Shown here: piece after piece, positions 4,846-45,123 of the stretch
Position numbering within the stretch: the stretch's first letter is position 1
Layout: the number at the start of each line of letters is the position of its first letter
Assembly: GCA_004431415.1 (NCBI GenBank)
Contig: QPMI01000250.1
Span: 53,875-117,874 of the forward strand
Source: Cyanophora paradoxa CCMP329
Taxonomy: Eukaryota > Plantae > Glaucophyta
Length of the DNA stretch: 64,000 bases
Direction of reading: 5' to 3'
Translations under genes and position numbers: made by a program
Notes under the pieces: generated by a model
Told to the model about the DNA's origin: nothing
Seen by the model: the letters and a program-made list of their open reading frames with translations, nothing else
The model's database searches: none

Positions 4846-5040
4846 CTAGGGGCTCGCGGGGGGAGCTCGAGGGTGGGGGGTGAACCAGCCTAAGCACCAG
4901 GTGCATGCCTCGCGATCGGGCTCGCTGCGCAGGCTGCACATGAAGAAGGGTCGGTTTTGGTTCTGGCCCTCCTTCCTGATTTGAGCTCGAGAGGTAAGGC
5001 GGGGGTGGGGGTGGGGGTGGGGGGGGGGGGCGGGTGGGGG

Positions 5041-5071
<31 letters not shown>

Positions 5072-5145
5072 TGGGGGGCGAACCTGACAGGCTTCACCCG
5101 CATTGGAATTCCACAGTCACAGTTGGGGTTCTTGATCTTGGCAGC
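4846..5145 (-). pseudogene. GRF-type zinc-finger gene fragment with one poly-C intron
   Basis: Removing the GTTCGC..ATCAG intron gives NPNCDCGIPMRVKPVRKEGQNQNRPFFMCSLRSEPDREACTW, matching the zf-GRF pattern CxCG...RKEGxNxGRxFxxC...C; upstream end abuts a repeat. Confidence 0.65.
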
Positions 5146-5258: not shown

Positions 5259-5474
5259 GACCCGAAGGCCCGAAGCACAATCAACAGCTTGATGTTGTGT
5301 GGTGTGGTGTGGTGTGATGTGGTGTGGTGTGGGGTGGTGCCCCCAGTCGACGTCCAGCCCCACTTGAGCAGAATGCACCAATAAGAGACGGAAAGGAAGC
5401 CTGAAGATGTGTAAGGAGCAGTGGAGTTATAGGAGGGTGGTAGTGTGACAAGCCCCACAAAGGCATCCTGCCTC

Positions 5475-5556
5475 GAGCAGGTGGCCGAGTGGTCTAAGGC
5501 GTTGGTTTTAGGCACCAATCTCCCCGGAGGCGCGGGTTCAAATCCCGTCCTGCTCA
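5475..5556 (+). tRNA. tRNA-Leu (anticodon TAG)
   Basis: Full cloverleaf: GAGCAGG/CCTGCTC-A acceptor, A-box TGGCCGAGTGG, anticodon stem TTGGT/ACCAA with loop TT-TAG-GC, long variable arm, GGTTCAAATCC B-box, TTTT Pol III terminator at 5557-5560. Confidence 0.95.
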
Positions 5557-5649
5557 TTTTCATGTTCTGGGCACTAACCACTGAGCATTTCCTTTTGGCA
5601 CCTTTTCCCGACCTTTTTGCCCTTTTCCAGGCAGTTGGGGCCATTTGCA

Positions 5650-5684
5650 TATCAGGGACTAACGTGTGCAACCCCCCCCCCCGG
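5650..5684 (+). repeat. Left terminal inverted repeat
   Basis: TATCAGGGACTAACGTGTGCAACCCCCCCCCCCGG; 15/21 identical to the reverse complement of the right end, followed by the same C-tract; preceded by TSD TTTGCA. Confidence 0.75.
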
Positions 5685-5721
5685 TATACGTCAATTCAAA
5701 CTCGGCGGCAAATTTTTGAAC

Positions 5722-8700
5722 ATGGCGGCACCGGCGGCACCCGCGGCGGGCTCCGTGCCCGCGGGAGAAATCGAACGTGTCGTGATCCACAGGAAGGGCA
5801 GCCCGGATGCGCCGCCTGTGCATTTCAAGCCGGACATGCTCAACGCCCGCCCCGTTGACGTTGTCCTGCGGCTGCTCAAGACGACTGTGTTTCAGAATCT
5901 GGACGCCGAGAACATGGAATTCGTGCTCGAGAAGCGCCACGACGGCACGTCGGAGGAGCTCGAAGACATCAGCCTCCTGTGCTCCACCTCGGGCTGGAAG
6001 ACGGGCAAGCAGGGCGTCTACTACACGGCAATGGGTGCGCGTGCTCACGCTAACCGCCGCCCGCGCTAACCGCTCGGCGCGCAGACGACCAGCCCGAGGT
6101 CGCCGCGCCGGCCGAGCCCGCCCAACGGGCGGCCACCTTCGGGGTCCGGTTTAGCGGCCGCTCCAGTCAGGGCCTTGCGGACGCGGTCGCGAGCTCGGGG
6201 CGCGGTGCGCTCGCAATCGCCGCCATGTCGATTCAAATTTTGGCGCCCAACTGACATTCAAATTTTGGCGCCACGCGCACAGGCTCGGGCGGGCCCACGA
6301 TCGTGCGCCCGCATCCTCGCGTCGCCATGCGATCCTCCTCACGCTATACGCGCAGCCGGAGGGGTTCGACCCCTCGGCAAGGTGGCCCCTCGCGCCCAGG
6401 TGACGACGAATGCGAAGGCCAAGGCCGCCGCGGCCGCGGTCACTCAGAAAGAGAAGGTCATGGCTGCGGCGGGTGCCGCGGTGAAGAGCGGAAAGGGAAT
6501 CGAGGCAGTCAAGCCTACGCCCTTCTCATTCGCGACCTACGCCCCGGCCGCGGACGCGGCCTGGAAGCCTCTCCACGACATGCTCGCGATCCTCGGGAAG
6601 AGTTCCGCACCGAGTGCGTCGCGATCCTCGGCTCGTTGCTTCCGTGATTGCGCGGGTCTTCCTTTCGAACCTGATCGCGCGTCTTCGTCGCAGTACACAT
6701 CCTGAGCGAGGAGATTTTCGTGAACTACTTCGACCCGAAGGGCTTCGAGATGGCGCGGAACATCACGAACCGCAGCGCGAACCAGCCGGAGTGGGGAACA
6801 CGCTGACTGTTGCCACGGCTGTCATCACCGAGATCGTGGATCCGAGCAACCCCGCGAAGAAGATGCATGTCGTCCCCTGGACAACATCGAGAAGATGTGG
6901 GTCATGCAGGTTAGCCGCCTAGCAGCATGCATTGCGTCCTCTTCTTCCCCATCCCACCTCTTCCTTTTTTCCTTCTTTCTCTGTGCTCACTGCATGCTTT
7001 TTGAACACCCGCAGGACCCTGTCAGCATGCAGGACTGGAACCTCTTCGTGAACAAGCACTTGGCCAAACCGACTGGCCAGCACATCATCTTCATGGGCGA
7101 ACCCACCGCCAAGATTGTCAGGGACGTGCGTGCATGCCCTTTGATTCCTCTTCTCTGGCCTCTAGAGCACACTGACCGCTTGCTTTCGAGCAGTTCGTAA
7201 ACAAGAAGGCTGAATTGGCCGCCCGCCGGAGCCGTGGTGTGGCCGACTTCCAGGAGCCCCGGTACAACGTCGTCTTCAAGCTCGGGACGTCCGGGAAGGA
7301 TCCAACGACCATCACAATCGAGATCGAAGGCATGCTTGATCCGCACCCCTACACGCAGCTCGCTGGTCTGTGCTCCTTTCTCCTTTCTTGGCTTGTGCTC
7401 CTTTCTGTAAAGGTCCCTCTTCAGTCTAACCTTAGCACCTGCTCTTCTATCTGCAGATGCATTCTCAGCGTTCATGACGAAGAAGCTGAACGCTGAGGAG
7501 CCCCTGGAAGTGTACAAGATGTTCGTCCCCAACAAGCCGCCGAAGGGCGCGGGCCGGCGGCCCAACAACTTCCAGGACGCCGTGAATGAAATCACCCCTG
7601 ACAACTTCCCAGTGTCCAGTGCGTTGTGCTCTCCTGGCACCCGATGCACCGCGCCCTTCTCTGATGCATGTGCCCCGTGCAGAGCTCACCGAGGTGATGG
7701 CCTACGAGGCGAACTGCAACTACATCGGTGTGGTGCTCACATCGATGTACTTCGAGCGGGGGTCGCAGCATGCCATCCTGCGGACGATGACTACGCCCGA
7801 AAAGGTTCTCAGACTGCCCTTCCTGCTTAGTTCCCCTCTGTCCACCGAATCTCACTCTGGTGCTGAGCAGAAATACTCCCTCAACCGCAAGGACCCGGAG
7901 CGGCTGGTCAATCCCACGTCGGGCGGCGCCCTCCTGCAGTCGTATGTCAACGGCATTGCAATGTGCCACGCCGCCATGTTCCACAAGATGTGCCCCACCG
8001 ACGTCCTCAAGCTGCGGGACGGCATGACTCGCCCGCTCTCGGTCTGTGACAGCTCAGGCTCCAACCCAACCCTTGCAGGGACTGCCTGACTCTTGCAGCA
8101 GCTCCGCATCGAGGATGCCCATCGGGAGCTCGTGAACCTGGAGCTGCGGCCGTACGTCGTCCCGGAGGACAAGCTCGAGGACGCGATGAAGGATGCCCGC
8201 AACGGTACGCCCGTTTCTGCCCTCGCCGTCCCCTGTCTCATGCTTCTGGAGCAGGGAAGTCTGCTTTCCTCGTCCATCCTTGCAGTGTTTGCGGCTACAA
8301 GCGCATCGGCAACCCGGAGCACGACGAAATTGTGGAGAAGTTCAGCAGGACCAGCAAGCACGTCTTCGTCTGCGACTGGCTCGGCTACAAGTGCTACCAG
8401 GGGCCCTGCTTCGGCGTGTGCCGGCAGGGGTCCAAGGACTTCTGCCACTGCGAGGAGGAGGACGGGCCCGTGGAGGACGTGGAACACGTGGAGAAAACGC
8501 CGGCGCCTCCGAAGCGGGGCCGGCGGTCCAAGACGGAGAAGGAGGCAGCAGCCCAGGCCCTCCCTGCGGCCCCGCCCTCCCTGACCCAAGCTCGGCTCCT
8601 CCTCTTCCGATCCCCTCCCTCTCGACACCCCGGCCGCCTCGAGCTCCCGTCCGGCGGCGGAGGGTTCGCGCAAGCGTGCCCGCACGATGAACTACGCCGT

Positions 8701-8769
8701 CCTCGCCAGCGGCGGGCTCGACCTGGAGGCCGCAAAGGAGAAGGCGCAGCAGGAGAAGGGCAGCAGTAG
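5722..8769 (+). CDS. Multi-exon cargo protein; C-terminal half resembles a divergent alpha-kinase (eEF2K/MHCK family)
   Basis: Spliced reading: YFERGSQHAILRT (cf. F-x-x-G-x-x-R-x-A-Y), AMCHAAMFHK (cf. AxxLAxxFN), LRPYV, EKFSRTSKHVFVCDWLG (cf. FSH..LLVxDLQG), C-terminal Cys/His cluster; many GT-AG introns; 1-2 apparent frameshifts. Confidence 0.5.
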
Positions 8770-9180
8770 TTGCTCTGAAGTAGCTGCTAGCTCTGCACAG
8801 CAGTAGCTGCAGATAGCCTGTGCTCTTGGTAGGATTTTATTTTCCTTCATGTCCATTCCGAGCTCTCCCGCTGGGCTCGCAACTCTATATATGTATCCAT
8901 GTGTTTGCTATCTATAGTAATGTGCTGTCTATCGCTGTGTATGTATCTATGTCGGCTGTTTATCGCTGTGTATGTATTTGTGTGCAATCTGGATTGATTT
9001 CGTATGTGTGCCTGCGCTCTCCTCTCTGCGTGCCTGGCCATGCATGCATCCCTTCAAGGTTCCCTTCCCAAGTTGACAACAACATCTCGTGTTCAGAGCA
9101 CGACTCAGCGACACGTTCACAGAGCTTCACGCGGAACAGGAAGCGCCGCGGGAGGGGAGCGACCCCCGCACGGCTAGCGC

Positions 9181-9784
9181 CTAGCGCCAGCAGTTGCGGC
9201 AGCGAGCGCCCTCCTTGTTGTACTTGGGGTCCGAGGCCCGGAGCGCCTCCTCCGAGCTGAACTCGGGCCAGAGGATCTTCCCCTTCATCTGCGCGCACCG
9301 CCTTTAGCTACTGAGTGCCTCAAAGCCGGGCACGCGAGCTGTACGCACGCGGAGGGCCGGGCACGTCGGGTTCTGGCCCGAGACCTTGGAGACCTTGTGG
9401 ATCTTGCCCGTCGACGGACTCCCGGTGTACTTCTCGTTCGGTGGAGGAGGAGATGCGTTGCGCCGAGCTTGCGCGCGGCGGGCTGCGGGGGCGCAGGGCG
9501 CTGACCTAGCTCGGCGCGGATGGCGGTTCAAAACGAGGACGCGCCACGGGCGACGGCGGCCGCGTACCTTCCTCGACTTCCGTCTTTATCGTGCGCACCT
9601 CCACCGTGAGCGCCTCCAGCTGCCGCTGGAGGTCGGCGATGAGCTCGCGTTCGGAGGGAGCGGCGCCCGCAGCGGACGCCGGCTCGGGGGCTGCTGCAGG
9701 CCGCCGGAAAGTGAACTCCTTGCCGCGAAGCGGCCCGGACTCAAAGACGCCGGCCGCGGCAGGTGCCGGGTTGCGCGAGTCCAT
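9181..9784 (-). CDS. Small coiled-coil + Ada-type Zn-binding domain protein (3 exons)
   Basis: Spliced: ...IADLQRQLEALTVEVRTIKTEVEE...YTGSPSTGKIHK...CPALRMKGKILWPEFSSEEALR...GARCRNCWR*, matching the Ada_Zn_binding pattern Y-x-G-S..G-K-x-H..C....F-x-S-x-E-A...G-x-R-x-C-x-x-C. Confidence 0.55.
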
Positions 9785-9827
9785 GGGTTTGACGGCGTCG
9801 TCAAGCCAGGGGGTACGCGTCGTTACC

Positions 9828-11807
9828 ATGCTCCCGGCTGCGGCCGCCGGTGCTCCTGCGCCGCCCGTGGCGGCTGTCGCGGCCGCGCAGTTTGAGCAGC
9901 CGGGTGAGCAGCTCCCCGACCTCATCGTAACAGCCGTGAAGGATATATCGAAGCACGGCGAGAACACCGTGTCACTGGCACCGGCGAAACTAGATGCTTT
10001 CATCGCCGAAGTGGCGGCGATCTTCGACGTTCCCGAATTCGCACGGCCCTTGCTCAAACTCTACGTGGTGCTCTGCGGCGCTGGCCACTGGGTGCCCAAC
10101 CAGCAGGTCGGCAGTTCGCCGCCCGTCGATGCTCGCCTGCTTCTGAATGCGCGCAGATATTCGACAAGCACATCCGGCAGGGAAATCTATACTACTTCAT
10201 CAGCACCAACCCCTGCGATGTGCCGAAGCTGCTCGCGGAGCAGGCGAAGTCGGCGGAGCAGCTGCACCACAGGCAGCGCGGGCGGGGCATCGGCGCCACG
10301 TCCAAGCCAAAGCGAACCCCGCAGCAGGTTCGGCCCGCGCAGACAGGCGCGCGCGGCATGTTCACTGCTGAACAAAATCGAGCAGCACACAGACCAACTC
10401 AACTTGCAGTGGATCCAGAAGACCGTGGGGCCAGCGGAAACTCTTCCTGGCAACCAAAAAACCAAGCTCTTGCTGGGGAGCGCGACGAAGTTCGTCGCCG
10501 AGAAAGCCACGAAATGTGCCCAGCAGAGGACGAAGGCTTCCTTGTCCCTCGCCGCAGATCTGTGAGCATTCTGATGGTGAACCCCGTCTGCGCTCCGCTG
10601 ACTCGTATCTGCAGGCTTTCGTGTGCCGAGATGTGCAAGCGGGAAGCCGGGGACGTTGTGTTTCCTGACGATAAGATGAACGATATGGAGAGTCTCATGA
10701 GCAAGCACGTGGTTGAGAAACAGCCGATTTCTCTGGCCGAAGCTAAACCGTTCATCGTATTCCTGGTGAATCAACAGTTCAAATCCGAGACTAAATTGCG
10801 TGCTCTCTTTATGGAGAATCTCAAAACCTCCCACAACATCGACAGCGTGGTTTGTGTCCTTCCCTTCACTCTCCTGCCCGCATCCTGATCACGGCTCACA
10901 GAAGGCAATTGCCGGGCTGGAGAGCAGGAGAATGCATCGGACGAGCCAGGGCACGTTTGTGCTTGCGCGTACTAAATTCCGTCGGGTCCGGCTGCAGCTC
11001 ACGGGTCAGCAGATGAGGAGGAGGAGGAGGAAGAGGAGGCTCGTCGCCGCACTCCAGAGGAGCGGGCCCTCCTTCTCAATGCCATGGCGGACAAAGCGTT
11101 GGCTGGAGCAGGGCGGGGCCCTTCCCCGCCTCCTGCCCTGCCTCCTGCCCCGCCTGCTGCTATACCTCCACCCCCCCCTGTGGATCTTCAGAAGGAGGAG
11201 GAGGGGGGGGGGGAAGAGGAGGACGAGGACGAGGACGAGGATGTGGCTCCTGACGGCGTCGAGGCCGATGATGGCACGTGTGAACCCGAAAGACTCCCGT
11301 CTGTATCCTAACTTTCTTCAGAATCGAAGCGATCGAAGGCGGGGGGCAGCAGCAAGGGCCCCAAGGAGAAGAGCACAGGAAGGAAGAAAAGACGAATCAC
11401 GTGCGTGTAGCCCTTCCCTTCAATTGTGTGTTCTTTTACACGTGAATGATCGAAATCGCAGCGAGACCGATGAGATCCCGCTGCCTGAAATTCGGGTTGT
11501 AGACCAGGCCGGAAGGAAGAACGTTGTGGACGTTCATTTCCAGATTCCAGCAGGCGTGTGCAAGTTGGAGGAGAAGCAGAGGCATGCAGTCATTTGGAAG
11601 CGGGTTCTGGAGAACGGGCGCAACACGATTCCACTCAAGCTCGACATGTCGACCAGGATGTGGAAAGAGAAAAAAGCCTTCAACAAGGAAGGAATACAGG
11701 TGTGGTCAGCAATAGTCGAAAGCAACGGCAATGGTGGCCTCGCCATAGTCAAAAAAAGCAAGAACAGCCGGGTCTTAGACACTAACAATCCAGATGCTAA
11801 ACCCTAG
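9828..11807 (+). CDS. Multi-exon hypothetical cargo protein with acidic tracts
   Basis: Coding-like segments (AKLDAFIAEVAAIFDVPEFARPLLKLYVV; MCKREAGDVVFPDDKMNDMESL; DEIPLPEIRVVDQAGRKNVVDVHFQIP) joined by GT-AG introns; no domain recognised. Confidence 0.55.
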
Positions 11808-11897
11808 CATGTTTCTTCAGTGCAATGCTTTCTTGTCCTTTCGTAACCACGCGTCCGGGGTTGAGGGGTGTGCAATCATCTCTGTACTCTGTACTCG

Positions 11898-12535
11898 TGA
11901 ACATCCAGAGAAAGAACTACCTTGACCAGAGACTGCAGCTAGCCGAGATGCGAGCAGCTCCAGAGAAAGAACTACCTTGACCAGAGACTGCCTAGCTATA
12001 GCCATATGCCTAGCTGCAGCTCGCGTGAGTGTCCATATGCCTAGCTGCAACTGCGGGGACGAGCGCAAGGACTCGATGGGGCGCACGGGGCTCAAGAAGA
12101 GGGGAAGCGCGGCCGATGCAGACGCGCTTGCGTGCCACGGTGCGCGCTTTCGCCACGCAGCCGTGGGCCCTTCCGCGACTCCGGTGATCGTAATGCTCCC
12201 GTCAGGCTTGCCGGAGGGCGTGCCAAAGCCGCAGCGGGACGCCACCTGCGGTATTGACGCCATCGTAAATGGCCCGTGCGGCGCCGCGGGCGGTGCACGG
12301 GCGCTGCGCCGGCGATGGATCGCAGTCTGTGTGCGTACCGTAGGCGGATGCGAGCCTCGGGCGTGCCTATTCGCAGCCCGCCGCGAGGAACAGGTGGTGT
12401 TGCCAACTGGCACGCCCGAGCGAGGCGGCGCGGGATGGGGCTGGGCGGCGCCCAGGTCACTGGCGGCTCGCTCGCGCCGAGCTCGCTGCAGGAGCGCTCG
12501 GCGGGCTCCGGGATGGCTGAGTCCGGTGTACCCGG
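11898..12535 (+). repeat. Internal inverted repeat copy A (core 12052-12535)
   Basis: Near-identical to the reverse complement of 21304-21895; directly upstream of the HTH gene. Confidence 0.9.
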
Positions 12536-12557
12536 GAGGTGTTGGGTACGCAGCGAA

Positions 12558-13332
12558 ATGGCCGCGGGTGGCGCGAGCCCGGCCCAGCCAAGCAGCATCG
12601 AGGAGGAGACTCTGCGCGGCTACGTGGACCAGAGGAAGACGGCCGCTGAGATACTGACTCTGCTAGCCGAGCAGCACGGCATCAACCTCAACAGGCGCGC
12701 TCTGCGCTCCAGGCTCCGCGAGCTTGGCCTCTCAACGAACTACGCTCTCTCTTTCAATGTCCTTTGTGTCGCCGTGCTGGAGGTTGTTAACTTAAATGGC
12801 CCCCTTTTCGGCGGCGGCATGATCCGCACGGCCCTCCGCGCCCAAGGCATCACAGCGTCGAAGTCGAGGATTCGGAAGGCCCTCGCGGTGTTCGATCCGG
12901 TGTGGCGCGAGGTCCGCGGGATCCGCGCGATCCTCCGCGAGCGAGGAATCAAAGCGTCGGAGTCATGGATTCAGCGCGTCGCCAGCGCCGCGGCCATGAA
13001 GATAGAGTGCGATCTGCCATGCTGCACTAGTATATCCCCAGTCTATCCCAATCTGGCTCACGCGTGCCTTGCCGCGGTGTGCAGGTCACACATGCCCGTG
13101 CCCTACAACCCAGCTGTGCAGGGCCGGAAGGAGCTCCGCGATCGCTTCGTCAACTACGCCCGCGCGCGCCCCCGATACAACGGGTCCGCGCCGCTGCAAT
13201 GCGTTCCGCTGTTCCGCTGAGGCGCTGCTTGCTCACAGGTACTTCGCATTTGCCTACGGCTGGACCCTCGGTCCCGACCAGCCCGAGAAAATCTACAGAC
13301 CTATAGATATGTACAGGTCAATGATGGAGTAG
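12558..13332 (+). CDS. Truncated transposase paralogue (N-terminal HTH region plus first catalytic D only; alternative start 12513)
   Basis: EEETLRGYVDQRKTAAEILTLLAEQHGINLNRRALRSRLRELGLSTNYALS..GMIRTALRAQGITASKSRIRKALAVFDP aligns with the transposase N-terminus; same intron position (YNG/gtccgcgccg); GWTLGPDQPEK corresponds to GWSVGFDQNEK, then stop. Confidence 0.8.
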
Positions 13333-13566
13333 GTGACTCGTCTGCATGTGCCCTTCGCATCCTTCACTTTGCACGTTCCTTGCTTGTGCCCTTTCATTTG
13401 TGTACAATTATTCTTTAAGCAGCTACTTTTGCTCCTTTGACACGCTGCACAAGCCACAGGGGCCGCCGGGCAAGAAAGGCAATCAATATGGACTTAAAAG
13501 CATCTGAACAGAAAAACAATGAAGCCTGAGGGGATCTCTCGGAGTTGAAGCCCTACAAAGATCTCA

Positions 13567-14429
13567 TTAAGGGCGTGCATCCAGCATCACACCGATGTAG
13601 TCGCAACCCGCTCTGTAGGCCATGATGTCCTTGAGATCTGCATCGGGCACATTTATCAGCAAAGGCGCGGCACGTCTAGGCGCAGCAAATGGAATGACCA
13701 CGCACTGTCCTTCGTGCGCACCCGCACTCCAATTCGTCGCGCATCCTCTTGCCAAGGATCTGCGAGCAGAACTAAGGCACGTGGCATCGCACTGCGAGCT
13801 CCGAGCATCGTACTGCGAAGATCGAGCTCGCCTCCTCGACCTCACGGATTCGGGCGTTCGCATCGGCCCGCGCCTTCTCAGACTTGCTCAGCTCCTCTTT
13901 CACCTCGCGGTACCTGTCGCATACGTCCTGCCGCAGAGCTGAGGCATGCTGAGCGGCCGCATGCGCATCGCACGCGCACCTTTGTCAGTCCCAGATCGAC
14001 CTCACGGATTCGGGCGTTCGCATCGGCCAGCGCCTTCTGAGACTTGCTCAGCTCCTCTTTCACCTCGCGGTACCTGTCGCATACGTCCTGCCGCAGAGCT
14101 GAGGCATGCTGAGCGGCCGCATGCGCATCGCACGCGCACCTTTGTCAGTCCCAGAATCTGCGGTCCGACGAATTCGTTCGCTCTCTCCCTGGCCTCCATC
14201 TCGGCCACCTTTCGGTGCAAAGTGTCCACCTCCGCTTGCTTATCGGCAAGCCTCTCGTTGAGGTGCTGTGGGAATTCCGAAGTTCATCAGATAGCTGGTG
14301 GCGCCCGCTACCGTCGCGCGGACCACAAAGGCAACGCACATTCAGACTGTGCTCGACGATCGTCATGACTTTCTCGTTGCAGCAAGGCCGCTCCACTTGC
14401 GTGCTGCTGTCCACCGACGCTCCCGCCAT
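13567..14429 (-). CDS. Coiled-coil hypothetical protein ending in an exon homologous to part of the alpha-kinase-like gene
   Basis: QHLNERLADKQAEVDTLHRKVAEMEARE..; last exon DLKDIMAYRAGCDYIGVMLDARP* resembles ELTEVMAYEANCNYIGVVLTS (7683-7745). Confidence 0.5.
13836..14155. repeat. 160-bp direct tandem duplication (exon + intron)
   Basis: 13836-13995 and 13996-14155 are nearly identical. Confidence 0.92.
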
Positions 14430-14509
14430 CGTCTTGGGGTAGTGTGAACCCCGAGCGGCATTCCGCGGCAGAACGCGTTCTTTGAACGATCGCGACAATC
14501 CGCGTCATC

Positions 14510-15801
14510 CGCGGCAACCGCGGCATTTTGAGTCTATCCGCGGCAACTCCGCGGCAGTTACGTGAGAATTAATTAACCACGAAATTAAAAAAGGGGGTAG
14601 TCCAAATGACGCGGCATCTTCGCGGCATTCCGCGCTACTAACAAATTCTGCGGCAATTACCGGTAGATGTCGTTAAATCCGGCAGTTGGCGACAGAACGC
14701 GGCATCCAAGGCGTCGTCGCGCTGCTTTCGCGGCTCTCGCCCGAGAATTAATTAACCACGAAATTAAAAAGTGGGGTAGTGTGATTGACGCGGTGTTTCC
14801 GCGGCACTCCGCGCTACTAGCGGCAATTAGCGGTTCTCGCGAGGTTTGTCGGCATTTTGCGGCTCTACAGAACCGCGGCGTCGCTTCGTATGTCCCGATG
14901 AGGCGCAGATCATGAGCTTCATGATCATGACGCGCGTTTCCTCCGCATCATGATGCAGGCATGTTCAGAGGAACTATATAAGTATTTTAATCATGCTTAG
15001 AACGTGTGCGCTTTTTCCACAGACCACCCTAGCTTCAGTGCTTTATGGCAATTCATGAATTGTCAGTCTGACAGTTCATCCTGTACTTTTCTGTTCGACA
15101 CATGTGTCTGTGGTCTGCATGCACAATCCCGCCTCCTCCTAAACATGATTAAAATATTTATAGAGTACCTCTGGACATGCAGGCATCATGACGCGGGAGA
15201 AAACGCGCCTCATGATCATGAAGCTCACGATCCGCGCCAGATGGCAAGCCAGAATTGACGCCGCGATTCGTATTTGCCGCGAACAACCGCAATGTACCGC
15301 GATTGTCAAATCATGCCGCGGTTAGGGAAAACTGCCGCGAAGTTGCCGCGTTATTTGGACTACCCCCCTTTTTTATTTCGTGGTTAATTAATTCTTGGGA
15401 AACCGTCGCGTAGAAAACGCGATTCCATCGCGGATGCCGCATTTTGACGCTAACTACCGAATTTGACGACGTGTGGCAGTAATTGCCGCTAGTAGCGCGG
15501 AGTGCCGCGGAAACACCGCGTCAATCACACTACCCCCACTTTTTAATTTCGTGGTTAATTAATTCTCGGGCGAGAGCCGCGAAAGCAGCGCGACGACGCC
15601 TTGGATGCCGCGTTCTGTCGCCAACTGCCGGATTTAACGACATCTACCGGTAATTGCCGCAGAATTTGTTAGTAGCGCGGAATGCCGCGAAGATGCCGCG
15701 TCATTTGGACTACCCCCCTTTTTTAATTTCGTGGTTAATTAATTCTCACGTAACTGCCGCGGAGTTGCCGCGGATAGACTCAAAATGCCGCGGTTGCCGC
15801 G
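14510..15801. repeat. 1.3-kb foldback palindrome with repeated AT-rich motif
   Basis: 14510-14829 is a near-perfect inverse of 15480-15801; inner imperfect arms ~14905-15000 vs ~15138-15235; motif GAGAATTAATTAACCACGAAATTAAAAA(A/G)..GGGTAG present 5 times. Confidence 0.92.
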
Positions 15802-16065
15802 ACACGTCGCGCGCTCACTCGCGTCACATTTCTTCCCATCCCATCAAGAGCCGCGCTCTTTCTTTTGCCATCGCATCCCGCTTCGACGCACAGTGCATGC
15901 GGTGTCGCGTTGGCGCGTGCGCAGCCGCAGGCCAGTCTGCCATCCAGAGCTAGCTGCTGGCATGAGAGAGACTGGGTTCATTTGGATGGGAGAAGAAACA
16001 GAACCGGAAAAGAGAGAAAAGGAGGTCTACAACGCCAGGATAGCGCGTGAGATACGAGAAGAGAG

Positions 16066-16979
16066 CTAGCGAGCCAGCACGCTCCAGTACAGCTGCCCGT
16101 ACGGGACGAAGATCTCCATCCCTGCTTGAGGACGCAGTCGGCGACTAGCCAGACCTGCCCGTCCTTCTCCACGCGGAAGAAGGCGTTGTTCGAGAAGCGG
16201 GGGTGAGTCCCGGGCTTATCCGCGTCATTTGCGAAGCGCGCTAGGCTCGCCTCCGGAAAGTCGGTGGCGTCGAGGACGTACGTGTGCCCGTACTTGCCTT
16301 TGAACGAGATGCTGTAGAGGCGACGCGAGGGCTCGCGAGCGAAAATCTCCAGCGCTTGAGTCTTCGTGTAGATCGTCCCGCGGTACGGGGTGATGAGGTC
16401 ACCTGGTCTGAAAACAACTGCACCACGGCGCACGCCCGGCCGCTCCACGAAGAGGCCGGTCCCGGCGCGCCAGATGCCCGACTGCTTCGGCAGAAGCCAG
16501 CCCGCGCGGCGATCGATGCCGATGGCAGCGGTGGTGCGCGGCAGACGGCCTCGCCGCGGGGTCTGCGGCAAACTTTACTCGCAGCGATACTGGCGGCACG
16601 AGCGGCAGTCGAACGAGCGCACGCTCACACCACGCGTCCTTGCCGTTACCTGCCGGCAGCGAGTGCAGCCTGGCAGTTAGCGCACAGGCGACCCACTGGC
16701 GCGCAGCGCACTCAGCGCACATACCAGTTCAGTACCTCCGGCCGAAGCGAGACGACGCAGCTGCCTATACATTTTGCTTCGGAACTGCCCACCAGCTCGA
16801 GATCCCAGCGCTGGGCTTCGGTACCGTACCCCCTGCCGGAGCACCCGCCGTCCCGTTCTCCTGCTGTGAGCTCAACGGCAAGGCTTCTGCTCAGCTCCTA
16901 CCGCGGTGCTAGCCCTCTTGTGCTAAATCACGCCCGCACGCCCCGCGCAATCTTCGGGAATTCCCGCGCTGACGCCCAT
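16066..16979 (-). CDS. SET-domain lysine methyltransferase (compact; Cys-rich N-terminus, start uncertain)
   Basis: SGIWRAGTGLF, GDLITPYRG, YVLDAT, SLARFAND, NNAFF, and after a 1-nt slip at ~16121 KQGMEIFVPYGQLYW*. Confidence 0.85.
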
Positions 16980-17024
16980 TTGGGCAGCCGTCAATACACA
17001 TAGGCGGCCTTCGGCACGGCAGAC

Positions 17025-19032
17025 ATGTCAGCGCCGGCCGAGGAACGGAAGCGGAGGCCGCGTACAGACGCGCAGACAAGCGAGCCGGGCGCGGGAAAGG
17101 CCGCGCGCAGGAATCGTGCTGCCCCGGATGCCGGCGGCCAACCGAGCTGGGGGCTAGCCAACGGCTTTTACGATCTGGATCCCGATACAGGATTGCCGTC
17201 GGCGTGCGGCACCTGGAGCAGACATGCATGATCCTCGGCGTGAAGGACACGTTCAGCAAGCAGGTGTACGATCCTTGACGGGGCAGCAAGTCAAGCGCAA
17301 CACCCAGCTTTACACAGATAGCTCGAAGCGTGTCGTTCACGTCTGCGAGATCTGCAGGATCCTCCTTTGGATCGGGGCTATCGCTGGCCGCGCGTGCGCC
17401 CCGCCGCGGTAACTCGTGCGCGGTGTTCGCTGACTCTGCCTGCAGGTGTGCTATCTCGGAATCGGTGTATTATGGGGAAAACGGAGTATGCGGGCCTCCT
17501 GTGATCACGCATATGCACACATGCGTGCAAATGCTCGCGCAAGTGCAAGCCGTTTACATGCACGTGTACAAGGACGCACCACGCGAGACGCTGAGAGATT
17601 TCCTGGTCCGGCTCGCTGCCGACGCCTTCAAGAAGGATCCGCCGCTGCGCCTGGCCGCAGCGCTCGTTGCTGTCCCTCCCGCTGCAGCCCCCCCCGCGGC
17701 AGATGCCGCGGCAGATGGGGTTGTTTCCCCCCCCGCTCCTCCTCCCTTTGCCGCACCTCCTCCCCCCGCCTCTCCCTTTGCCCCTCCCCCGCCTCTCCCT
17801 TTGCCCTCCCTCCGCCTCTCCCTTCGCCCCCCCCGCGCCTCCTTCCGTTCCTCCCCAGCCCCTCCTGCCACCCTCCTGCCTCCACCTCCCGTCCCCGCCC
17901 GCCCTGCCGTCGCCGTCTCGCCCTTTCTCGGAGGATTAGGCCTGCCCGAGCAGCAGCTCTACGCTCTGTGGCATGTCGATTCCTGTGGTCGACGTCGAGA
18001 TCGAAAATCTACACCGGCCACAACCGATAGGAATGAATGGGATGAAGGGGAGGAATGCATAGCTTCCGACAGAAGCCGGGTATGCTGCAGAATGCACAGT
18101 TGATGGCAATTGACTGACAGTTCCATGCCAGGTCGTCAGGAACTGAAGCGATGAAGATCAGCGACGCCAAGAAACCAGTACGAGAGTATGTGCGGAATGT
18201 CATTGATGACTTGGCGATGATCCCGAAGACGGCAAGATTCCACTTACTACCTCTCAAGTGCAGACAGGTAAACGTACAGTTCTTCGTTCTGTCTCAGATC
18301 AATGGTTTTGACCGACTTCTTCCGTGTGTGTCTGTGCCCTCAGGCATCTATCTTCTCATGCTTGTCAGCAGTCAATGGAGAAACCGCTGTGGCATGTGGA
18401 GAGCCCGTGCCCTTCGGCCTCCTCGACAACACGGCCTACATTCATCTGCTGGTCGACTTAGCTCGACAGGGCAAGCATGTGCTCTTTTGCTTCAACACAA
18501 ATCACAGGACACCCACAGGGCGTGAGGTTGGACACTGGTGTGCCGTGCAGACTGCTTCCGTAGATCGATGTCTGATGCAACACACAGGATTCTCGGCTAC
18601 CTCCGCAAAGAAGGACGTCAGACTGTCTGCACCTTCGCCGATTCAATGAATTGGACGAAAACATTGGGTAAGGTTGCAGATATGCTCCACTCCCATAGAG
18701 TAAGTGTGCTGGGGAACATCTACGACCACGCTGTTCAGTTTAATTGCGTCGATGTGAGTTCTTTTCTAGAGTATCTGTATTGTCTTTCCTGATGCACTTT
18801 GCTCCAGTGCGGTGTGTGGATCTGGGCTGCTGTGTACACGCTCATGTTCCCCACATGTAGCGATAGCCAGCTCAACGTGCAGGCTGCTCTCCGCTCACAG
18901 CTGCTCACAAGTAAACCAGATGGAAGTGCGAATGAGTGCTGGATCAGGCAGTGGAGGGAACGGATCCGCAAGCTAGCTCTTGTAGTTTGTGACCCTGCCC
19001 GGGATGACGAGGATCTCAAGCTTGAGCCCTGA
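17025..19032 (+). CDS. Ulp1/C48-family (SUMO/NEDD8-type) cysteine protease with Pro-rich linker
   Basis: Spliced C-terminus VLFCFNTN..GHWILGYL..FADSMN..VQFNCVDCGVW gives the His-Asp-Gln-Cys set of clan CE/C48. Confidence 0.75.
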
Positions 19033-19107
19033 ATCAAAATATTTACATTGTGCGCACAGATGCATACAAAGCCTGCGATTATCTTCTCATGCTCGCTACG
19101 GCACGTT

Positions 19108-21326
19108 CTACAGTGCGCTGCCTGTGCTGGGCAATCTTCGCGAGGGCCGCCGCCTGGCGTTGTTTCGCCTCGCGCACTCTCTTTGTGCCGACAGTGGGGC
19201 GGCGCTGACGCGCGCTGCTGTGAGCCGCTTCCGCTGTTCCCACGCCTCCTTCTGCTTCAGCTGCTCTTCGTTCTCTTCGTTCTCTGACTCCTGCTCCTCC
19301 TCTTCCGCCTCCTGCTCCTCCTCTTCCTCTTCCTCCTCCTCTTCCTCCTCCTCTTCCTCCTGCTCCTCCTGTGCACGCCGCGTTGCTTGCCGCCGCTCAT
19401 CCTTTGCACGCCGCATCGCTTGCCGCCGCTCCTCCTTCCTCCTCCTCTTCTTCTCCCTTGACTCCGAGCACTCAAGGCCTAAAAGGCATGTGTTAGGAAT
19501 GCGATGCATGAACATCCAGTATCCAGAGGCACGCACAGTACCACTTGCCCTCGGGTATGGTGGCATCCGAAAAACCAGCACATTCGACGTGCCACGCCCT
19601 GCCGCACGCCCTCCCATCGCAGATGAGGAGTTCGCCATTCAGAGAGGGATCATCCTCCGATCCGGCCAAATGGCATTTCTGGCAGCAGCAGGCGAGGCCT
19701 ACACAAAACGTTAGCGAGGTCTTGAATCGCGAATGTAATGCAAAGGACACACAGAGATATTCCATCATTTTGAATCCATTCTCGACCACGAAGTTCACAC
19801 ATTCAGGGTGGTAGGCGTTCATGCATCTCTCCCTGACGTGCTTTCGCTTGATGCACGCCTCTTCCGACCGCCCGCAGCCGCCCGGCTCGTGCTGGCAGAT
19901 GGATTCCTTGTTGTGGCAGCACAAGTAGGGTGGCTGTGGTAGTTGGGGAAGTTTTCGCCGCAGACGAGGCAACGATAAGTCCATCGCCGTCCAGGCTGCC
20001 TGCGGTAGTCTGGAGGGGGAGAGGGGTGCTTGAGACTGAGAACCTGCGCCCGCATCTACTGCCTCCGCAATGATTAAAGCCTCCGTTGCCTGAAGGCCGA
20101 CGTCATCGTGGAAGTGCTGGTTGCACTCCTTGAACTCAGCCTCGGAGATGGTCTTCACTCTCTCACCGCTGAGCCTTGCCACAGTGCGGATATCCATGCG
20201 ACTGTAAAGAGATCAGAAAGGGTACTGTCACAGGGGGTGGGTGGGGGGGGCGGGATTAGTATGTACCACTCAGGACAGGACGGCCTCCCGTGCTTCAGCA
20301 GGTCCATGATGCAGGATTCATGGAACTTGTGGGAACAGATCTTCCCCTCGCTGTCGGCCACCGTCACAGGGAGCCCTCTCTCAGGATCCTGGACTGAGCT
20401 CAAACAGACTGAGCAGGTTGCATTGATCCCGATCAGAAGATCAACAGCCTCCTTGTCCTCCTTCGAAATTGATGCACGTGCTCTGCACGTTCACGACTGT
20501 CAGCAAAAACATCTGCTATGCAGCAGCATCTGCAGACCTCAGCTCCTGTATAGCGCCCTCGGACAAGTCCATAGCCGCCATCTCGGCTAACTCCTCCTCC
20601 GTGGGGGGCAGAGAACTTCTTCAGCAGGAGCGGGCGTGGGCGGCACAGGATCGACCCTAGGGGCGCCGCACGACTGTAAGAGATTGGTACAACTGTTGTG
20701 CAGCAGCAGAGCACGCACTCGACTGGAACGAAGAACAGGAACACGGGCACACGGCCAGGCACATCCGGCGACGCAGCCGGCGCGGGTGGCGCCGCCTCCT
20801 CAGCCTTGTTTTCAGTTAGCTCTGATTCATTCCTGTACAGGTATCATCAGCGCGGATGGCGACGGATCGCGGGCAACGCACGTCGCAGTGACCGTTGCAC
20901 TAAGGGCGATCGGCTCCGGCGACGGGGCGAGGGGGAGTGCGGAGCGCAATCGTGCACGTCAACGGTCGCTTTCTGAGGCGGGCTGCAGCTGATGGCGGTG
21001 GCTGGCGCTGGCTGCTGGCTGGCGTCGACGTCTTGGTCGGCGGGCTGCGCAGCGAACAGCTGTCTGCAGGTGCTGTCCTCAACAGCTGTCTTAGCTATGA
21101 GGTCCTCGGGTGGCGCCGGCGGCTGCGGCTTCGGTCCTTCAAAGCCGCCGTTTGCCCAGTCAGCAATCGCTTCCGCGTGACGGTACTTGATCCAGTGGTT
21201 ACGCTCGGCTATATAGCTTTCACGGCGCGCCTTTTGGGGTGTGTTGAGCTGCGCCGGCGAGGCCAGACGCGGCGTGCGCATTTTCGATGTGTACCCCAAT
21301 TCTCCGGGTACACCGGACTCAGCCAT
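19108..21326 (-). CDS. RING-H2 + PHD finger protein with acidic/basic tail (alternative start 21281)
   Basis: CSVC..CSHKFHESC..CPEC (RING-H2); CQKCHLAG..ELLICDGRACGRAWHVECAG..PEGKWYC (PHD); second PHD-like motif CMNAYHPEC; poly-E tract. Confidence 0.85.
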
Positions 21327-21895
21327 CCCGGAGCCCGCCGAGCGCTCCTGCAGCGAGCTCGGCGCGAGCGAGCCGCCAGTGACCTGGGCGCCGCCCAGCC
21401 CCGCCCCGCGCCGCCTCGCTCGGGCGTGCCAGTTGGCAACACCACCTGTTCCTCGCGGCGGGCTGCGAATAGGCACGCCCGAGGCTCGCATCCGCCTACG
21501 GTACACACACAGACTGCGATCCCATCGCCGGCGCAGCGCCCGTGCACCGCCCGCGGCGCCGCACGGGCCATTTACGATGGCGTCAATACCGCAGGTGGCG
21601 TCCCGCTGCGGCTTCGGCGCGCGCTCCGGCAAGCCTGGCGGGAGCATTACGATCGCCGGAGTCGCGGAAGGGCCCACGGCTGCGTGGCGAAAGCGCGCAC
21701 GCAAGCGCGTCTGCATCGGCCGCGCTTCCCCCTCTTCTTGAGCCCCGTGCGCCCCATCGAGTCCTTGCGCTCGTCCCCGCACCTGCAGGCATTTGGAAAC
21801 TCACTCGAGCTGCAGGTATTGTCGGGGAGCTGCTCGCATCTAGGCTGGCTGCAGCCGAGGTGAAGCTTGAAGGTAGTTCTGTCTCTGGATGTTCA
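21304..21895 (-). repeat. Internal inverted repeat copy B (core 21304-21781)
   Basis: Reverse complement of 11898-12535; directly upstream of the RING-PHD gene. Confidence 0.9.
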
Positions 21896-22043
21896 TCCCG
21901 AGCTCTAGGCCTAGGTCAATGTCACTTTGCTGTATGTGGATGTTTCCATTTCCTTTCCCGCCCAGTGCGAGCAGGAGAGAGCGTTTCATTAGACATAGCC
22001 AGAGCTAGCTATATCAAGCTAGGGCTAGAGGGCCGCTAGAGGG

Positions 22044-24244
22044 CTAGCCTAGCGGGCCCGGGGCCGCGCACGAGGGATCGAAATTGTGCACATAATAAAA
22101 GAAAGCTGCACGCATTTCCTGGGGCTCCAGCAGGTACTCGTCCGGTGGGAAGAAGCCCATCCCCTGCATTGACCGGGCACGGGGCGCGTCGTTGTTGGCG
22201 GGTGCGTCGTGCACCCACTGCATCCAGCCGGGGATGGACACATCGTACAGGTGCAGGTCGGAAAGCTGCTCGTTCAGCTGCAGCATGAACAAGAAGAGCC
22301 GGGGGAGCCCTCCAAGGGGGTTGCTGGAGTACTGCTCCGCAATGCGTCCACGTACCCCCGGAGCTTCCTCATCATACTCCCGCCCGAAGTTGACCACATG
22401 CTTCCAGATCTCCTTCAAGTCCTCATTGCATTCCTTGAACATCTCGTCCCGCAGCATCCTGAGCGTGAGGAAGCTTGATAAACAATGAAGGGAGTGCCCG
22501 GGGCAGGTAATTTCACACCGGAGAGTCGTGCGGGGTTCGTCAAAGACGACGAAGTCGGGCTCAACGGGGTCCTTCATGCGGCTGTCAAGGACCGAGCCGT
22601 TGACAGAGCCGCCCCTCTGGTTGTGGATATCCTTCATTTCCGTCCACTCTGGCAGGTTGAACATCAGAGGCCGCATGTAGTTCATGTTCTCGCGCCTGCA
22701 CCCGGGCCCAGTGAGCTGGGACCAGCACAATTTAAAGAACAGGGAACAGGTGCCGCAGTGCATACCACCAGTCTGGCCTGCCGTTCTGCCCCCCCGTCTC
22801 CTTGGAGCCTGAATTCACGTGGTGGTTCCAGCTGTTCTTCGCGATGGCGAGGCCGTACTCCATCACGTACATGGTCGCCTTCGCCATGGCAAACAGCTGT
22901 TGAGGGTCGAGTCTGAATGCAAGCGGAGAATAATAAGCATGCATGCCAAGTGAATTCGAATGCACGCATGCAAATTAAGAGCTCTTAATTTGGCAAGTCT
23001 CAGCCAGAAGTAACTGATTGTAGCCTTCCAACATGTACATAGGGATGGCCATCATGGTCTGTAGCTGTCATCGACTGGCGGGTCGCACGAAGGGCACCTG
23101 TTGTACCACTCGAGCATCTCCAGCATCACAGCCGCATCCACGATGGGCTTCGTGACCTTGACATTCACCCACCTGCCCATGGAGTGTTACCGGAGAGAGC
23201 AAATACAGAAGGAATGCGTGGGGGAGAGGGCGTGTCCATCACCTCCAATTCTTCTCGACCTTCGGGTTCCGGTAGGATGGGCCCACCATGACGGCGTCGC
23301 GCAGGTCGTTGGGATCTTCGAAGTTGAGCCTCCGCCAGGGAAGGCCGGTGGTGGGGTCCGTGATGTTGCCCTTCGCAATTTCCTCGTCGATCAGCCGCTC
23401 GGTTTCCTCCAGCACGAGCGCCTTTCGGTGGCCGCGCCCCGGGGTCAGGTGCGGCGCAGGTGAGCAAGAGGAGTGGGAGGGAGCACACGTGGGCTGTCCA
23501 GGTCAGCCGGTTCTCTGCGCCGCAGTCCGAGGAGACCGTGTCGAAGACCCCGAACTCCTCCACGACCGACCTGCAGCTCTGGGGTCACGGAGCACGCAGC
23601 TGCGAGGCGTGTGCCCCTCGCGCGCACTTGTACAGTTTGTAGCCTTGTATAGTGGAGCGAGCAAGCCCGCAATGCAAGTCCAGGATGAATGTGGACGTAT
23701 TCTCCACGGCCGCGAAGATGTAGACGTTCGTGTACGGCACCGCCTTCTCGTTCTGGTCGAAACCGACACTCCAGCCGAAGAACTTCCTGCGCACAAGGCG
23801 TGCGTCAGCGCGGCGCGGCGGTGCGGCACGGGCGGCGTGGCGGCGCGGACCCGTAGAAGGTCGAGCGGTGGATGGACCTGCGCTTTTTCGCGAACTCGCC
23901 CAGGCGAACGTTGCGTCCCGTCGGATCCAGCTCCGCGAGGGCGTGCTGAATCCTAGACTTCGCCACAGTGATGCCCGCGGCCCTGAGCGCCCGCGGATCG
24001 CGTCGTAGCCGTATCCGTCGCCGCACAAAGTCGCCGCTTCTTCTACGACATCGTAAACTGCCTCCTTTGAGAGAGAGTAGTCCGTCGAGAGGTCGAGGTC
24101 GCTGAGCTTGTAGCGCAGGGCGCGCATCGAAATCTGGATTTGGTGCTCCTCGTGCAGCAGAGCCACGATCTCCCTCGCCTTTCTCTTCTGAGCCACATAC
24201 TCCTCCAGAATCTCCGGGTCGATGTAAATCTCGAAGCCGCTCAT
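22044..24244 (-). CDS. IS3/IS481-like (IS3EU-type) DDE transposase, multi-exon
   Basis: HTH N-terminus (ISMRALRYKL..LSKEAVYDVV..GYDAIR..GITVAKSRIQHALAELDPTG); catalytic D in GFDQNEK (23756-8), D in SSDCGAEN (23525-7), E in SYRNPKVEKNWR (23254-6); later SWNHH motif; one 1-nt frameshift in a G run at ~23993. Confidence 0.85.
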
Positions 24245-24796
24245 TGCGAGGCGAACCGCAATGAGCGCCCGCAGCTCCGTGCACTAGGCTATCGCTGTTT
24301 TGGCCGGCTGGGGCGGCTCTCCGGCGGTCTGCCGCCGGCTGTTCCCGCGGTCGAAAAATTCACTGCACCCCCCCTCCCTTGACGCTGTCGTCAAAACCGA
24401 GTGCTGGGCCGCGTCGGGCGCGCGCAGCATCTTCAGCGACCTAGCATCGCATCCGTGGTAGGTTTGAGCGCTGCCGGCATGCATCTGAGTGCCCGAGCTG
24501 GCGCCCGCACGCTCGACGGGCGCGCGTCCAGGGCAGCGCGCGCGCAGCCCGCCCGGCCACACGAACCACTTGTATGTATGATACAAAGACCTCTTACGCT
24601 ACTAGCTCGCCGGCGCCGCGCCCGGGCTCCTGTTCACTATGCCAGGATCGGCTGCCAGGGACTGCCTGCCTGGCCGCTGCCATGCCCGGTGCATGTGCCT
24701 ACGTATTTGTTCCACCAAGGAGCGCCCCGCTCGCCGCCCCCTGCCTTGCACCATGACCATATACAACAATCCCTCCGGGAATTGAAGCAAATGCTC

Positions 24797-24853
24797 CTGG
24801 GGGGGGTGCACACCAAGGGCCCTGACAGGGGGTGCACACCAAGGGCCCTGACA
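24797..24853 (-). repeat. Right terminal inverted repeat, tandemly duplicated (26 bp x2)
   Basis: gggggtgcacaccaagggccctgaca at 24802-24827 and 24828-24853, followed by TSD TTTGCA. Confidence 0.78.
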
Positions 24854-25905
24854 TTTGCACCAAAATTCACGCCACTCGCCCCGCCTGCAGCAATAGAAGA
24901 GGCTCTGATATCGAAGGCAGGTCGAGGCAGAGCACCTCTGCGCCTGAACGCAGCCTTCCTGCGTGGCGGCGCCCTCAACACGAAGTTGAAAGGCTGGCAG
25001 CTGGTCCCCTAGGCCTGTTCCTGTTCCGCCAACCAAGGAGGTGGTGCCGCGCTGCTGAACTGTGGATAGGCCGGCTCAGCCCCCTGGAACCACTCTCTGG
25101 GCGTGTTAGCACACACTGTTCGCATGTAAGCTGGGCTTCCAAATTGTACAAGTTGCCCTTCAGCTTGCAGCTGCAGGGGGCCGGTCGCGCGAGGTAACCG
25201 ACGAGTCGCCGGCACATGTCCTGCCTTCATCCAAGTTAGCTATATAGTGGTGCTATGATGTTCCGGTGCGCACTGACCGCGTCCTTGCGCTGCCGGGGAG
25301 GTCGAGGTCGTGCGGTGCAGTGGCCCCGATCCGACGGTTGAGCTGGCGCAGAACGACCTAGAAAGAGGGGCTGGGACGATAGGTTGCCGCTATATGCTTT
25401 GGCTCGGGTTCCTATGTCCTGTAGAGTCCTTGAGGCGGGGTATTCTGTACCCCCCAGCTCGCTGGCACAGCCTGCAGCTGGCAGTGTCTTTTACTTGCTC
25501 TCTCTCTCTAGCTGGCAGTGCGTGGCACAGCCTGGCAGTGGCGCCCCCGCGGCCGGCGGCCGCCTGGCGGCTGATCTAGAGCGGGTCGCTAGCGCTAGCG
25601 GAAAGGATCTATGCGCGCCGGTTTCCCGAAATCGATCTCGGCCGGGCCTTCACTAAGTAAGTTAAGCTTCAATTGCAAGCTTTATGATTTCGATCTGCCC
25701 CTAGGCCTGTGCGCAGGCCCAGGCTGAATTCATCTCTAGTTCTCATGGTCAGAGCCCGTATAAGGGCTCCCCCCACTGCCTAAACGACCCCGCCTCCCTG
25801 GGAGCACCTGTAGCCAATATCCGCGGGGAGGCCAATGGCAGCGCGCTGCAGTGTACATCCCACACTTGTGACCCGGAACTTGCGATATAACTTTTTGTCC
25901 ATATG

Positions 25906-29107: not shown

Positions 29108-29267
29108 GCTCTAGGTAGATCTGCCGTGCACACGCAGTAAGTTTTGAGAGATAAGGCAGTGCAGCTGGTCGTTCGCTTTCCCGCTTTCCCTCCCGTGCAG
29201 TTCCTCCAATTTCATCGCGAAGTCCGCGTCAAAAATATCTCGTTCAAGCCTACCTGGCTGCTGCTAG

Positions 29268-41601: not shown

Positions 41602-45020
<3,419 letters not shown>

Positions 45021-45123
45021 TGCGTTGTAAAACCTCGCGGAGCGAGGGCGAACAGAGGTACGAAAGAAGAGCCCTCTTTTTTTCGAGGGCGGGTACAGGC
45101 AATCGAAGCGAAGAGCGGCAGGC

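Follow-up and report, generated by a model that had tools for sequence, protein, structure and literature searches.

IS3EU/GingerRoot is a little-studied superfamily of eukaryotic DNA transposons, and to our knowledge none of its transposases has been characterised biochemically. IS3EU elements are defined by a DDD/E transposase, TA..TA tips and target site duplications (TSDs) of 6 bp, and GingerRoot elements share the 6-bp duplications, have TA..TA or occasionally TG..CA tips, and group with IS3EU at 99% bootstrap (PMC10045372, PMC6839031); the two have been merged as IS3EU/GingerRoot (PMC10045372). Relatives that bear cargo are already known: Styx, the IS3EU elements of rust fungi, and GingerRoot. 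Styx has been described as active, and non-replicative transposition has been suggested for it (PMC10853768), while fungal transposons, including IS3EU elements, carry TET/JBP genes that have been proposed to aid escape from silencing (PMC12730594). Here we analyse a stretch of 64,000 nucleotides (the window) from the glaucophyte Cyanophora paradoxa CCMP329 (contig QPMI01000250.1, positions 53,875 to 117,874). Positions 5650-24853 of this window most probably represent a single copy of a DNA transposon that is very young, is present in multiple copies, and belongs to IS3EU/GingerRoot or stands next to it.

The element proper measures 19,204 bp and is flanked on both sides by an exact TTTGCA. 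Once the inverted repeat fixes the tips, an exact match of the six flanking bases is expected by chance about once in 4,000. On the reverse strand the outer right end reads TGTCAGGGCCCTTGGTGTGCA at 24853-24833, followed by five C (to 24828), and it agrees with the left end (Table 1) at 15 of 21 bases. The inverted termini are thus imperfect; each is followed by a C run, beyond which the ends resemble each other weakly. A degenerate terminus pattern matches just the two ends within the 64-kb window, which, the pattern having been built from both ends themselves, shows their uniqueness and not an independent significance. A search of metagenomes for the exact left end gave no match. The flanks have no paralogue within the window and no reading frame runs across them when joined, in a check for a trace of the empty site. 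The insertion site has a tRNA-Leu gene 88 bp to its left (anticodon TAG, 5475-5556, + strand; ARAGORN, Rfam 61.6 bits); a single insertion cannot show a preference for tRNA neighbourhoods. The right terminal unit of 26 bp is duplicated in tandem at 100% identity (24802-24827 and 24828-24853), with the inner 21-bp repeat at 24807-24827 and the outer one at 24833-24853. The TSD adjoins the outer of these copies, which offer two potential right ends, and this tandem arrangement could be the footprint of aborted or repeated end-joining, or a variant affecting transposase binding.

An earlier note on this DNA had proposed the exact TTTGCA at both ends (5644-5649 and 24854-24859), inverted termini with C runs and a DDE transposase near the right end, and all three are borne out. 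For the transposase, gene model P0006 threads through 24244-22047 of the minus strand at 100% identity and matches the Pfam family rva_4. The gene has eight true exons; the model splits them into nine segments by a pseudo-intron of 44 nt, which serves only to avoid a frameshift present in this copy. All introns of the model, 44-185 nt in length, run from GT (or GC) to AG. Queried with the open frame 24283-23588 (- strand), a library of 1.84 billion representative proteins returned four proteins, three of which, together with their cluster mates, are Cyanophora paradoxa gene models (EukProt EP00741, tig000... contigs). The integrase core domain rva_4 (PF24764) is matched by P0006 at 27.2 bits and by P0001 at 28.7 bits, with a cut-off of 26. 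Weak Pfam matches are also found to Clr5, over transposase residues 10-48, and, below the cut-off, to HTH_21 in transposase-type exons. Among the nearest named clusters listed by the ESM Atlas all are rva_4 (up to 0.96), some also with Clr5. We infer that rva_4 is the counterpart of IS3EU. Alignment places a candidate catalytic triad in P0008 at D142 (GW..GFDQNEK), D200 (SSDCGAEN) and E268 (KVEKNWR), and no HHCC zinc motif is visible upstream of the core, in residues 1-140 of P0008. The AlphaFold model of the transposase is unusable (mean pLDDT 33.6), and a scan of metagenomes with a transposase pattern gave 393 pattern matches, none of them confirmed.

The gene models indicate that this transposase does not travel alone. 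Three models from tig00001049, namely g6672 (a fusion of an acidic protein and a helix-turn-helix (HTH) protein, P0012), g6674 (SET-like, P0015) and g6676 (transposase, P0006), thread whole through the window, which is therefore that locus or an identical copy of it. The order HTH / SET / transposase is repeated at three or more other loci, for instance in P019275-P019273-P019269 (tig00000215_g18610 and neighbours) and again in tig00020921 (g15925, g15927, then g15931, listed under tig00020927). Partial sets are present in tig00020689 (g13000/1, g13003) and tig00000113 (g5679, g5682), and single genes in tig00000912 and tig00020553. Compared exon by exon with the window, the models of these copies differ by one-base frame changes and exon choice only, with no isolated amino-acid substitution. 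Judged from these models, the cargo is multi-copy and collinear across loci; the earlier note had named a shared cargo order as a sign of a mobile unit and single-copy cargo as a sign against one, and the order proves common to several contigs. In a collection of 5.8 billion proteins, within the length range searched, the acidic/HTH and SET cargo genes have no relative beyond the element copies, and for this reason they are not recent captures of host genes. P0002 (tig00000743_g3882) opens with residues 1-149 of the transposase, continues through some 120 unrelated filler residues and ends with positions 5891-5694 (- strand) of the window at 98.5%, a translation as expected for an internal-deletion derivative keeping both end regions. 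Exact-product look-ups for an open reading frame of the window, P0001 and P0003 found no encoding contig on record.

The element has an integrase-type DDE core, a 6-bp TSD and an HTH-like N-terminus without HHCC, all features of IS3EU/GingerRoot; its tips, 5'-TA ... CA-3', combine one of each published type. The earlier description as IS3EU-like agrees with the published definition in TSD and, given this mixed pair, partly in the tips (PMC10045372, PMC6839031). A position in or next to the superfamily fits the Pfam family, TSD, tips and HTH N-terminus, which make it an assignment by shared characters and not a phylogeny. Like GingerRoot, known from Selaginella lepidophylla and animals (PMC6839031), the element has an integrase-related DDE transposase, a 6-bp TSD, extra sequence and deletion derivatives. 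GingerRoot elements, however, span 3.9-12.9 kb (maximum 12,903 bp) and carry captured gene fragments, whereas here 19.2 kb hold whole spliced genes conserved across copies; no sequence-level match between the two was found. In a size comparison that covers Styx and GingerRoot, 19.2 kb is about 1.5 times the longest described relative, GingerRoot. Styx, an IS3EU-related element of Zymoseptoria tritici (PMC10853768), is likewise multi-copy with a 6-bp TSD, a DDD/E transposase and co-opted coding sequences beyond it, but it has 7,927 bp and four coding sequences, the glaucophyte element being 2.4 times as long with about nine genes. IS3EU elements of rust fungi and Tuber also combine a 6-bp TSD with an epigenetic-mark gene, there TET/JBP, and another gene, an alpha-kinase; their cargo consists of three genes and is not the SET / RING-PHD / HTH-paralogue set found here (PMC12730594). 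Given the four coding sequences of Styx, and TET/JBP plus alpha-kinase in rust IS3EU, the baseline of about two genes from which the earlier note started is outdated.

Bacterial IS3 elements also have an HTH_21-type region ahead of the DDE core, and in them a separate HTH-only product (OrfA) regulates transposition, a role that the truncated HTH paralogue of the present element may share. Here the genes are spliced, the paralogue is separate and diverged, and there is no programmed frameshift; the similarity to the bacterial IS3 model (NCBIfam transpos_IS3: 11.6 bits, cut-off 160; E 0.12; HTH region only) is at noise level. Starships and KDZ/Plavaka-type cargo carriers are several to many times larger than this element and resemble it in concept only, in that many passenger genes are moved. 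No tyrosine recombinase (including the Starship captain, DUF3435) or KDZ transposase was found in any Pfam scan, and the end-proximal gene is a DDE transposase, not a Starship-type captain. Of the proposed analogy with such giants, what stands is that the element carries cargo and is large, though only by the measure of the IS3EU superfamily; nothing else is common to Starships. None of the papers searched names both Cyanophora and IS3EU, in line with the expectation that the element is probably undescribed, and the C. paradoxa genome paper, which reports 11.5% unknown repeats, describes no such element. What is new is a length 1.5 to 2.4 times greater, about nine whole, spliced and conserved genes, a transposase-derived paralogue and a glaucophyte host.

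Several observations weigh against assigning the locus to a young transposon of this superfamily. The rva_4 score is barely over the cut-off and spans the C-terminal half of the profile; sequence search found no transposase homologues outside Cyanophora, and sequence and profile searches of the transposase against solved structures gave no match. The terminal inverted repeats (TIRs), imperfect over 21 bp, compare with 100-150 bp in GingerRoot, and with more than 30 bp and TAYGG..CCRTA tips in the rust/Tuber IS3EU (PMC12730594). The other loci are known here from gene models alone (EukProt), and the ends and the TSD from this copy alone. Finally, in this copy a one-base difference interrupts the reading frame of the transposase, and another that of the SET gene.

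These two breaks bear on whether the copy is alive. Where P0001, P0002 and P0008 need GGGG in the transposase, this copy has one G fewer (23990-23992); the SET gene likewise lacks one G at 16120-16122 by comparison with the P0016 copies (GGGG), which puts the last SET strand out of frame; the tig00001049 Augustus models step over both short runs via invented introns. Taken at face value, such losses relative to models from other loci would make this copy of the same transposon family a dead relic, with real frameshifts and neither movement nor protein expression, a state that we consider somewhat unlikely. Indeed, just one-base indels and gene-model choices, and no substitutions, separate the copies, and the assembly whose models thread exactly here was built from PacBio RSII reads with Quiver polishing followed by majority-rule Illumina mapping (PMC6704402). 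As such polishing is weak in repeats and the copies show no substitutions, the short G runs are probably an assembly error rather than decay. If both shortenings are real, this copy would be non-autonomous and rely on intact sister copies, and with both ends intact its mobilisation in trans would still be possible. Augustus models P0005, P0006, P0015, P0017 and P0018 show invented introns or early ends at one-base homopolymer indels. Long-read errors have probably persisted in the repeats of the published assembly and distort its proteome.

The unity of the 19.2 kb can be questioned as well. A small IS3EU-like element nested here, or ends that bracket host DNA, would give a composite whose extra copies arose by segmental duplication, and the presence inside of a second, transposase-derived gene in opposite orientation, of a 550-bp internal inverted repeat and a palindrome, and of ends known from a single copy would suit such an origin. 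Yet nothing else resembling a terminus is found within the element. With just 43% identity to the transposase, the inner paralogue is old and does not represent a second recent element, and the cargo is without host paralogues. At least seven contigs hold pieces in the same order with no substitutions, the 6-bp duplication is exact at the very tips, and the short derivative P0002 retains both end regions, all of which makes a composite highly unlikely.

Polintons are 15-20 kb long, have a 6-bp duplication and carry about ten genes, with an rve-type integrase and a cysteine protease. In its size, 6-bp TSD and integrase-fold enzyme, and through a possible Ulp1-like protease recognised by eye, the element recalls such integrated virus-like elements, whether Polinton/Maverick or polinton-like, and the nearest language-model clusters of the SET-like gene include SET proteins of giant viruses. 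But Pfam scans of 173 stop-free segments (all those of at least 45 aa outside the two mapped genes) contain no protein-primed polymerase, packaging ATPase or capsid family, nor a recombinase. Moreover, numerous short spliceosomal introns interrupt the genes, the integrase belongs to rva_4, carries an HTH N-terminus and is not of Polinton type, the TIRs measure 21 bp and not hundreds, and the Ulp1-like protease is without Pfam or PDB support; we regard a viral origin as extremely unlikely. A single transposon in or near IS3EU/GingerRoot remains the preferred reading.

The content of this transposon was examined by searching exons individually, whole proteins being searched only as stored database models, and by a codon-usage scan with a table trained on concatenated exons. 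The count of about nine genes, already proposed in the earlier note, is plausible: 5-7 Augustus models span 9.8-24.2 kb in two copies, and a coding signal covers 5.7-8.8 kb. That the cargo contains introns, as the same note held, is confirmed by the spliceosomal introns of the threaded models. The features are listed in Table 1.

Table 1 Coordinates of the features of the element within the 64-kb window, from the left to the right end (a dot marks features given without a strand).
Feature	Position	Strand	Details
Left TSD, TTTGCA	5644-5649	.	Exact match to 24854-24859
Left terminus	5650-5682	+	TATCAGGGACTAACGTGTGCA at 5650-5670, begins TA; then A and 11 C
One or two multi-exon orphan genes	5695-8761	+	Coding-type codon usage in 11 segments; translations
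Acidic orphan protein	9828-11699	+	Exons 1-8 of Augustus models P0012 and P0003, threaded at 100%
Inverted repeat arm 1	12011-12558	+	About 550 bp, 94% overall, blocks 97-99%; holds the putative start of the HTH paralogue
Transposase-derived HTH paralogue	12492-13332	+	Clr5/HTH_21-like N-terminal region and first catalytic-D strand (GW..G.DQ.EK)
Two tandem copies of a 160-bp unit	13836-14155	.	Repeat analysis
Near-central palindrome	14510-15801	.	322-bp arms, 99.4% identity, around 171-180-bp repeats; between convergent genes
Small SET-like gene	16067-16772	-	4 exons in model P0015
Possible cysteine-protease (Ulp1-like) gene	18118-19029	+	GHW... and QCG motifs, by eye only
RING plus PHD finger gene	19496-20490	-	RING exon 20158-20490; PHD at the 3' end of exon 19496-20212
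Open reading frame	20850-21326	-	First residues MAESGVPG and upstream 550 bp common to the HTH paralogue
Inverted repeat arm 2	21282-21818	.	Heads open frame 21326-20850
DDE transposase gene	22044-24244 (including stop)	-	Model P0006, 527 aa, tig00001049_g6676, threaded at 100% identity
P0006, segments 1-5 of nine	24244-24027, 23982-23851, 23786-23628, 23570-23489, 23421-23243	-	
P0006, segments 6-9 of nine	23172-23098, 22912-22766, 22695-22519, 22458-22047	-	
Right terminus	24799-24853	-	21-bp repeat ending ...CA plus G run, twice in tandem
Right TSD, TTTGCA	24854-24859	.	Exact match to 5644-5649

At the left, the orphan gene region includes a Cys-rich stretch at about 8.3-8.6 kb, and none of its exons, the Cys-rich one included, has a Pfam or PDB match. 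Homologues of the acidic orphan protein (P0012/P0003) were found in Cyanophora element copies only. Augustus fuses this protein with the HTH paralogue over a 792-nt intron; because such a length is atypical, the other introns in the three threaded models being of at most 185 nt, the two are read as separate genes, and the HTH paralogue probably starts at MAESGVPG. Its product is 43% identical to the N-terminus of the transposase and stops before the second D and the E. The 550 bp upstream and the first eight codons that this gene has in common with the open frame next to the transposase may reflect co-regulation or a recent gene conversion within the element. A simple palindromic head-to-head dimer was considered for the element as a whole and is ruled out, the internal repeats not being symmetric about the centre.

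Among the remaining cargo, the complete SET model P0016 reaches 22.1 bits with Pfam SET (cut-off 22.4) in a match that covers profile positions 10-105 of 105, and of the 30 nearest atlas clusters of the SET-like gene 29 are SET, giant-virus SET proteins among them. The gene has no sequence match in the PDB, its SET exon searched alone has no Pfam match, and the AlphaFold model of this exon is unusable (mean pLDDT 36.7). Pfam and PDB searches with the exons of the Ulp1-like gene gave no support. The RING exon matches zf-RING_2 at 30.2 bits (cut-off 27.3) and has no match among solved structures, while the PHD region has 48 PDB matches, nearly all of them PHD fingers (best E 7e-4), and a Pfam PHD_NSD match with E 0.019. 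Beyond RING, the exon-by-exon Pfam search gave only weak matches below the cut-off, namely Clr5/HTH_21, PHD_NSD and scattered low scores taken as chance.

From the ends, the TSD, the transposase family and the multi-copy, collinear cargo observed here, a scheme of transposition can be proposed. The spliced DDE transposase would bind the 21-bp termini through its Clr5/HTH_21-like N-terminal region, cut at the TA/CA tips and insert the element at a target whose strands are cut six bases apart. Once repaired, this staggered cut would leave the TTTGCA duplication at a site 88 bp downstream of the tRNA-Leu gene. Movement may proceed by excision or by copying-out as in bacterial IS3. Everything between the tips would move as a unit, including about eight further spliced genes, the near-central palindrome and the short tandem repeat. 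Transposition may be regulated by the HTH-only paralogue, either through competition for the ends or through recruitment of the transposase, and, by analogy with fungal TET/JBP, the products of the SET, RING-PHD and possible protease genes may blunt silencing through an action on host chromatin. A bolder version, rather unlikely as a whole, would make this the first IS3EU-type element reported from a glaucophyte and a self-contained toolkit transposon. In it, chromatin at or around the element would be rewritten against silencing by a SET methyltransferase, together with a RING-PHD ligase or reader and perhaps a SUMO-type protease, and an OrfA-like HTH paralogue would set the rate of transposition.

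The surroundings of the element have features of their own. To the left of the tRNA-Leu gene there are a G-rich run of 78 bases (5001-5078) and a (TGGTG)n-like microsatellite (5290-5339). To the right, 29000-39000 and 42000-49000 contain stretches of 72-84% G+C against 52-68% in the element, which is compositionally distinct from its surroundings, and a tRNA-Ser(CGA) gene is called within the high-GC block at 38117-38209. The last 14 kb (50000-64000) are even in composition, with a G+C of 0.58-0.61 and a GC skew of about -0.1 throughout, which suggests that the minus strand bears a single long gene or else an extended repeat array. Enrichment of CCGCGG as a signal is ruled out, its count in the window being no more than chance.

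For the organism, the finding means that the C. paradoxa proteome probably includes about 25 to 60 Augustus 'genes' that are copies of this element and should be masked in comparative work. For the family, copies that are nearly identical, a clear end of 21 bp, sister copies with an intact spliced transposase, and natural deletion derivatives make a tractable system for the study of transposition. The element extends the superfamily in size and gene load, with 19.2 kb and about nine genes against 12.9 kb in GingerRoot and four coding sequences in Styx, and in host range to the glaucophytes. Its chromatin-type cargo parallels fungal TET/JBP and makes the idea of anti-silencing cargo testable in an early-branching alga; were the toolkit version true, this cargo would be adaptive for the transposon, and not a chance capture.

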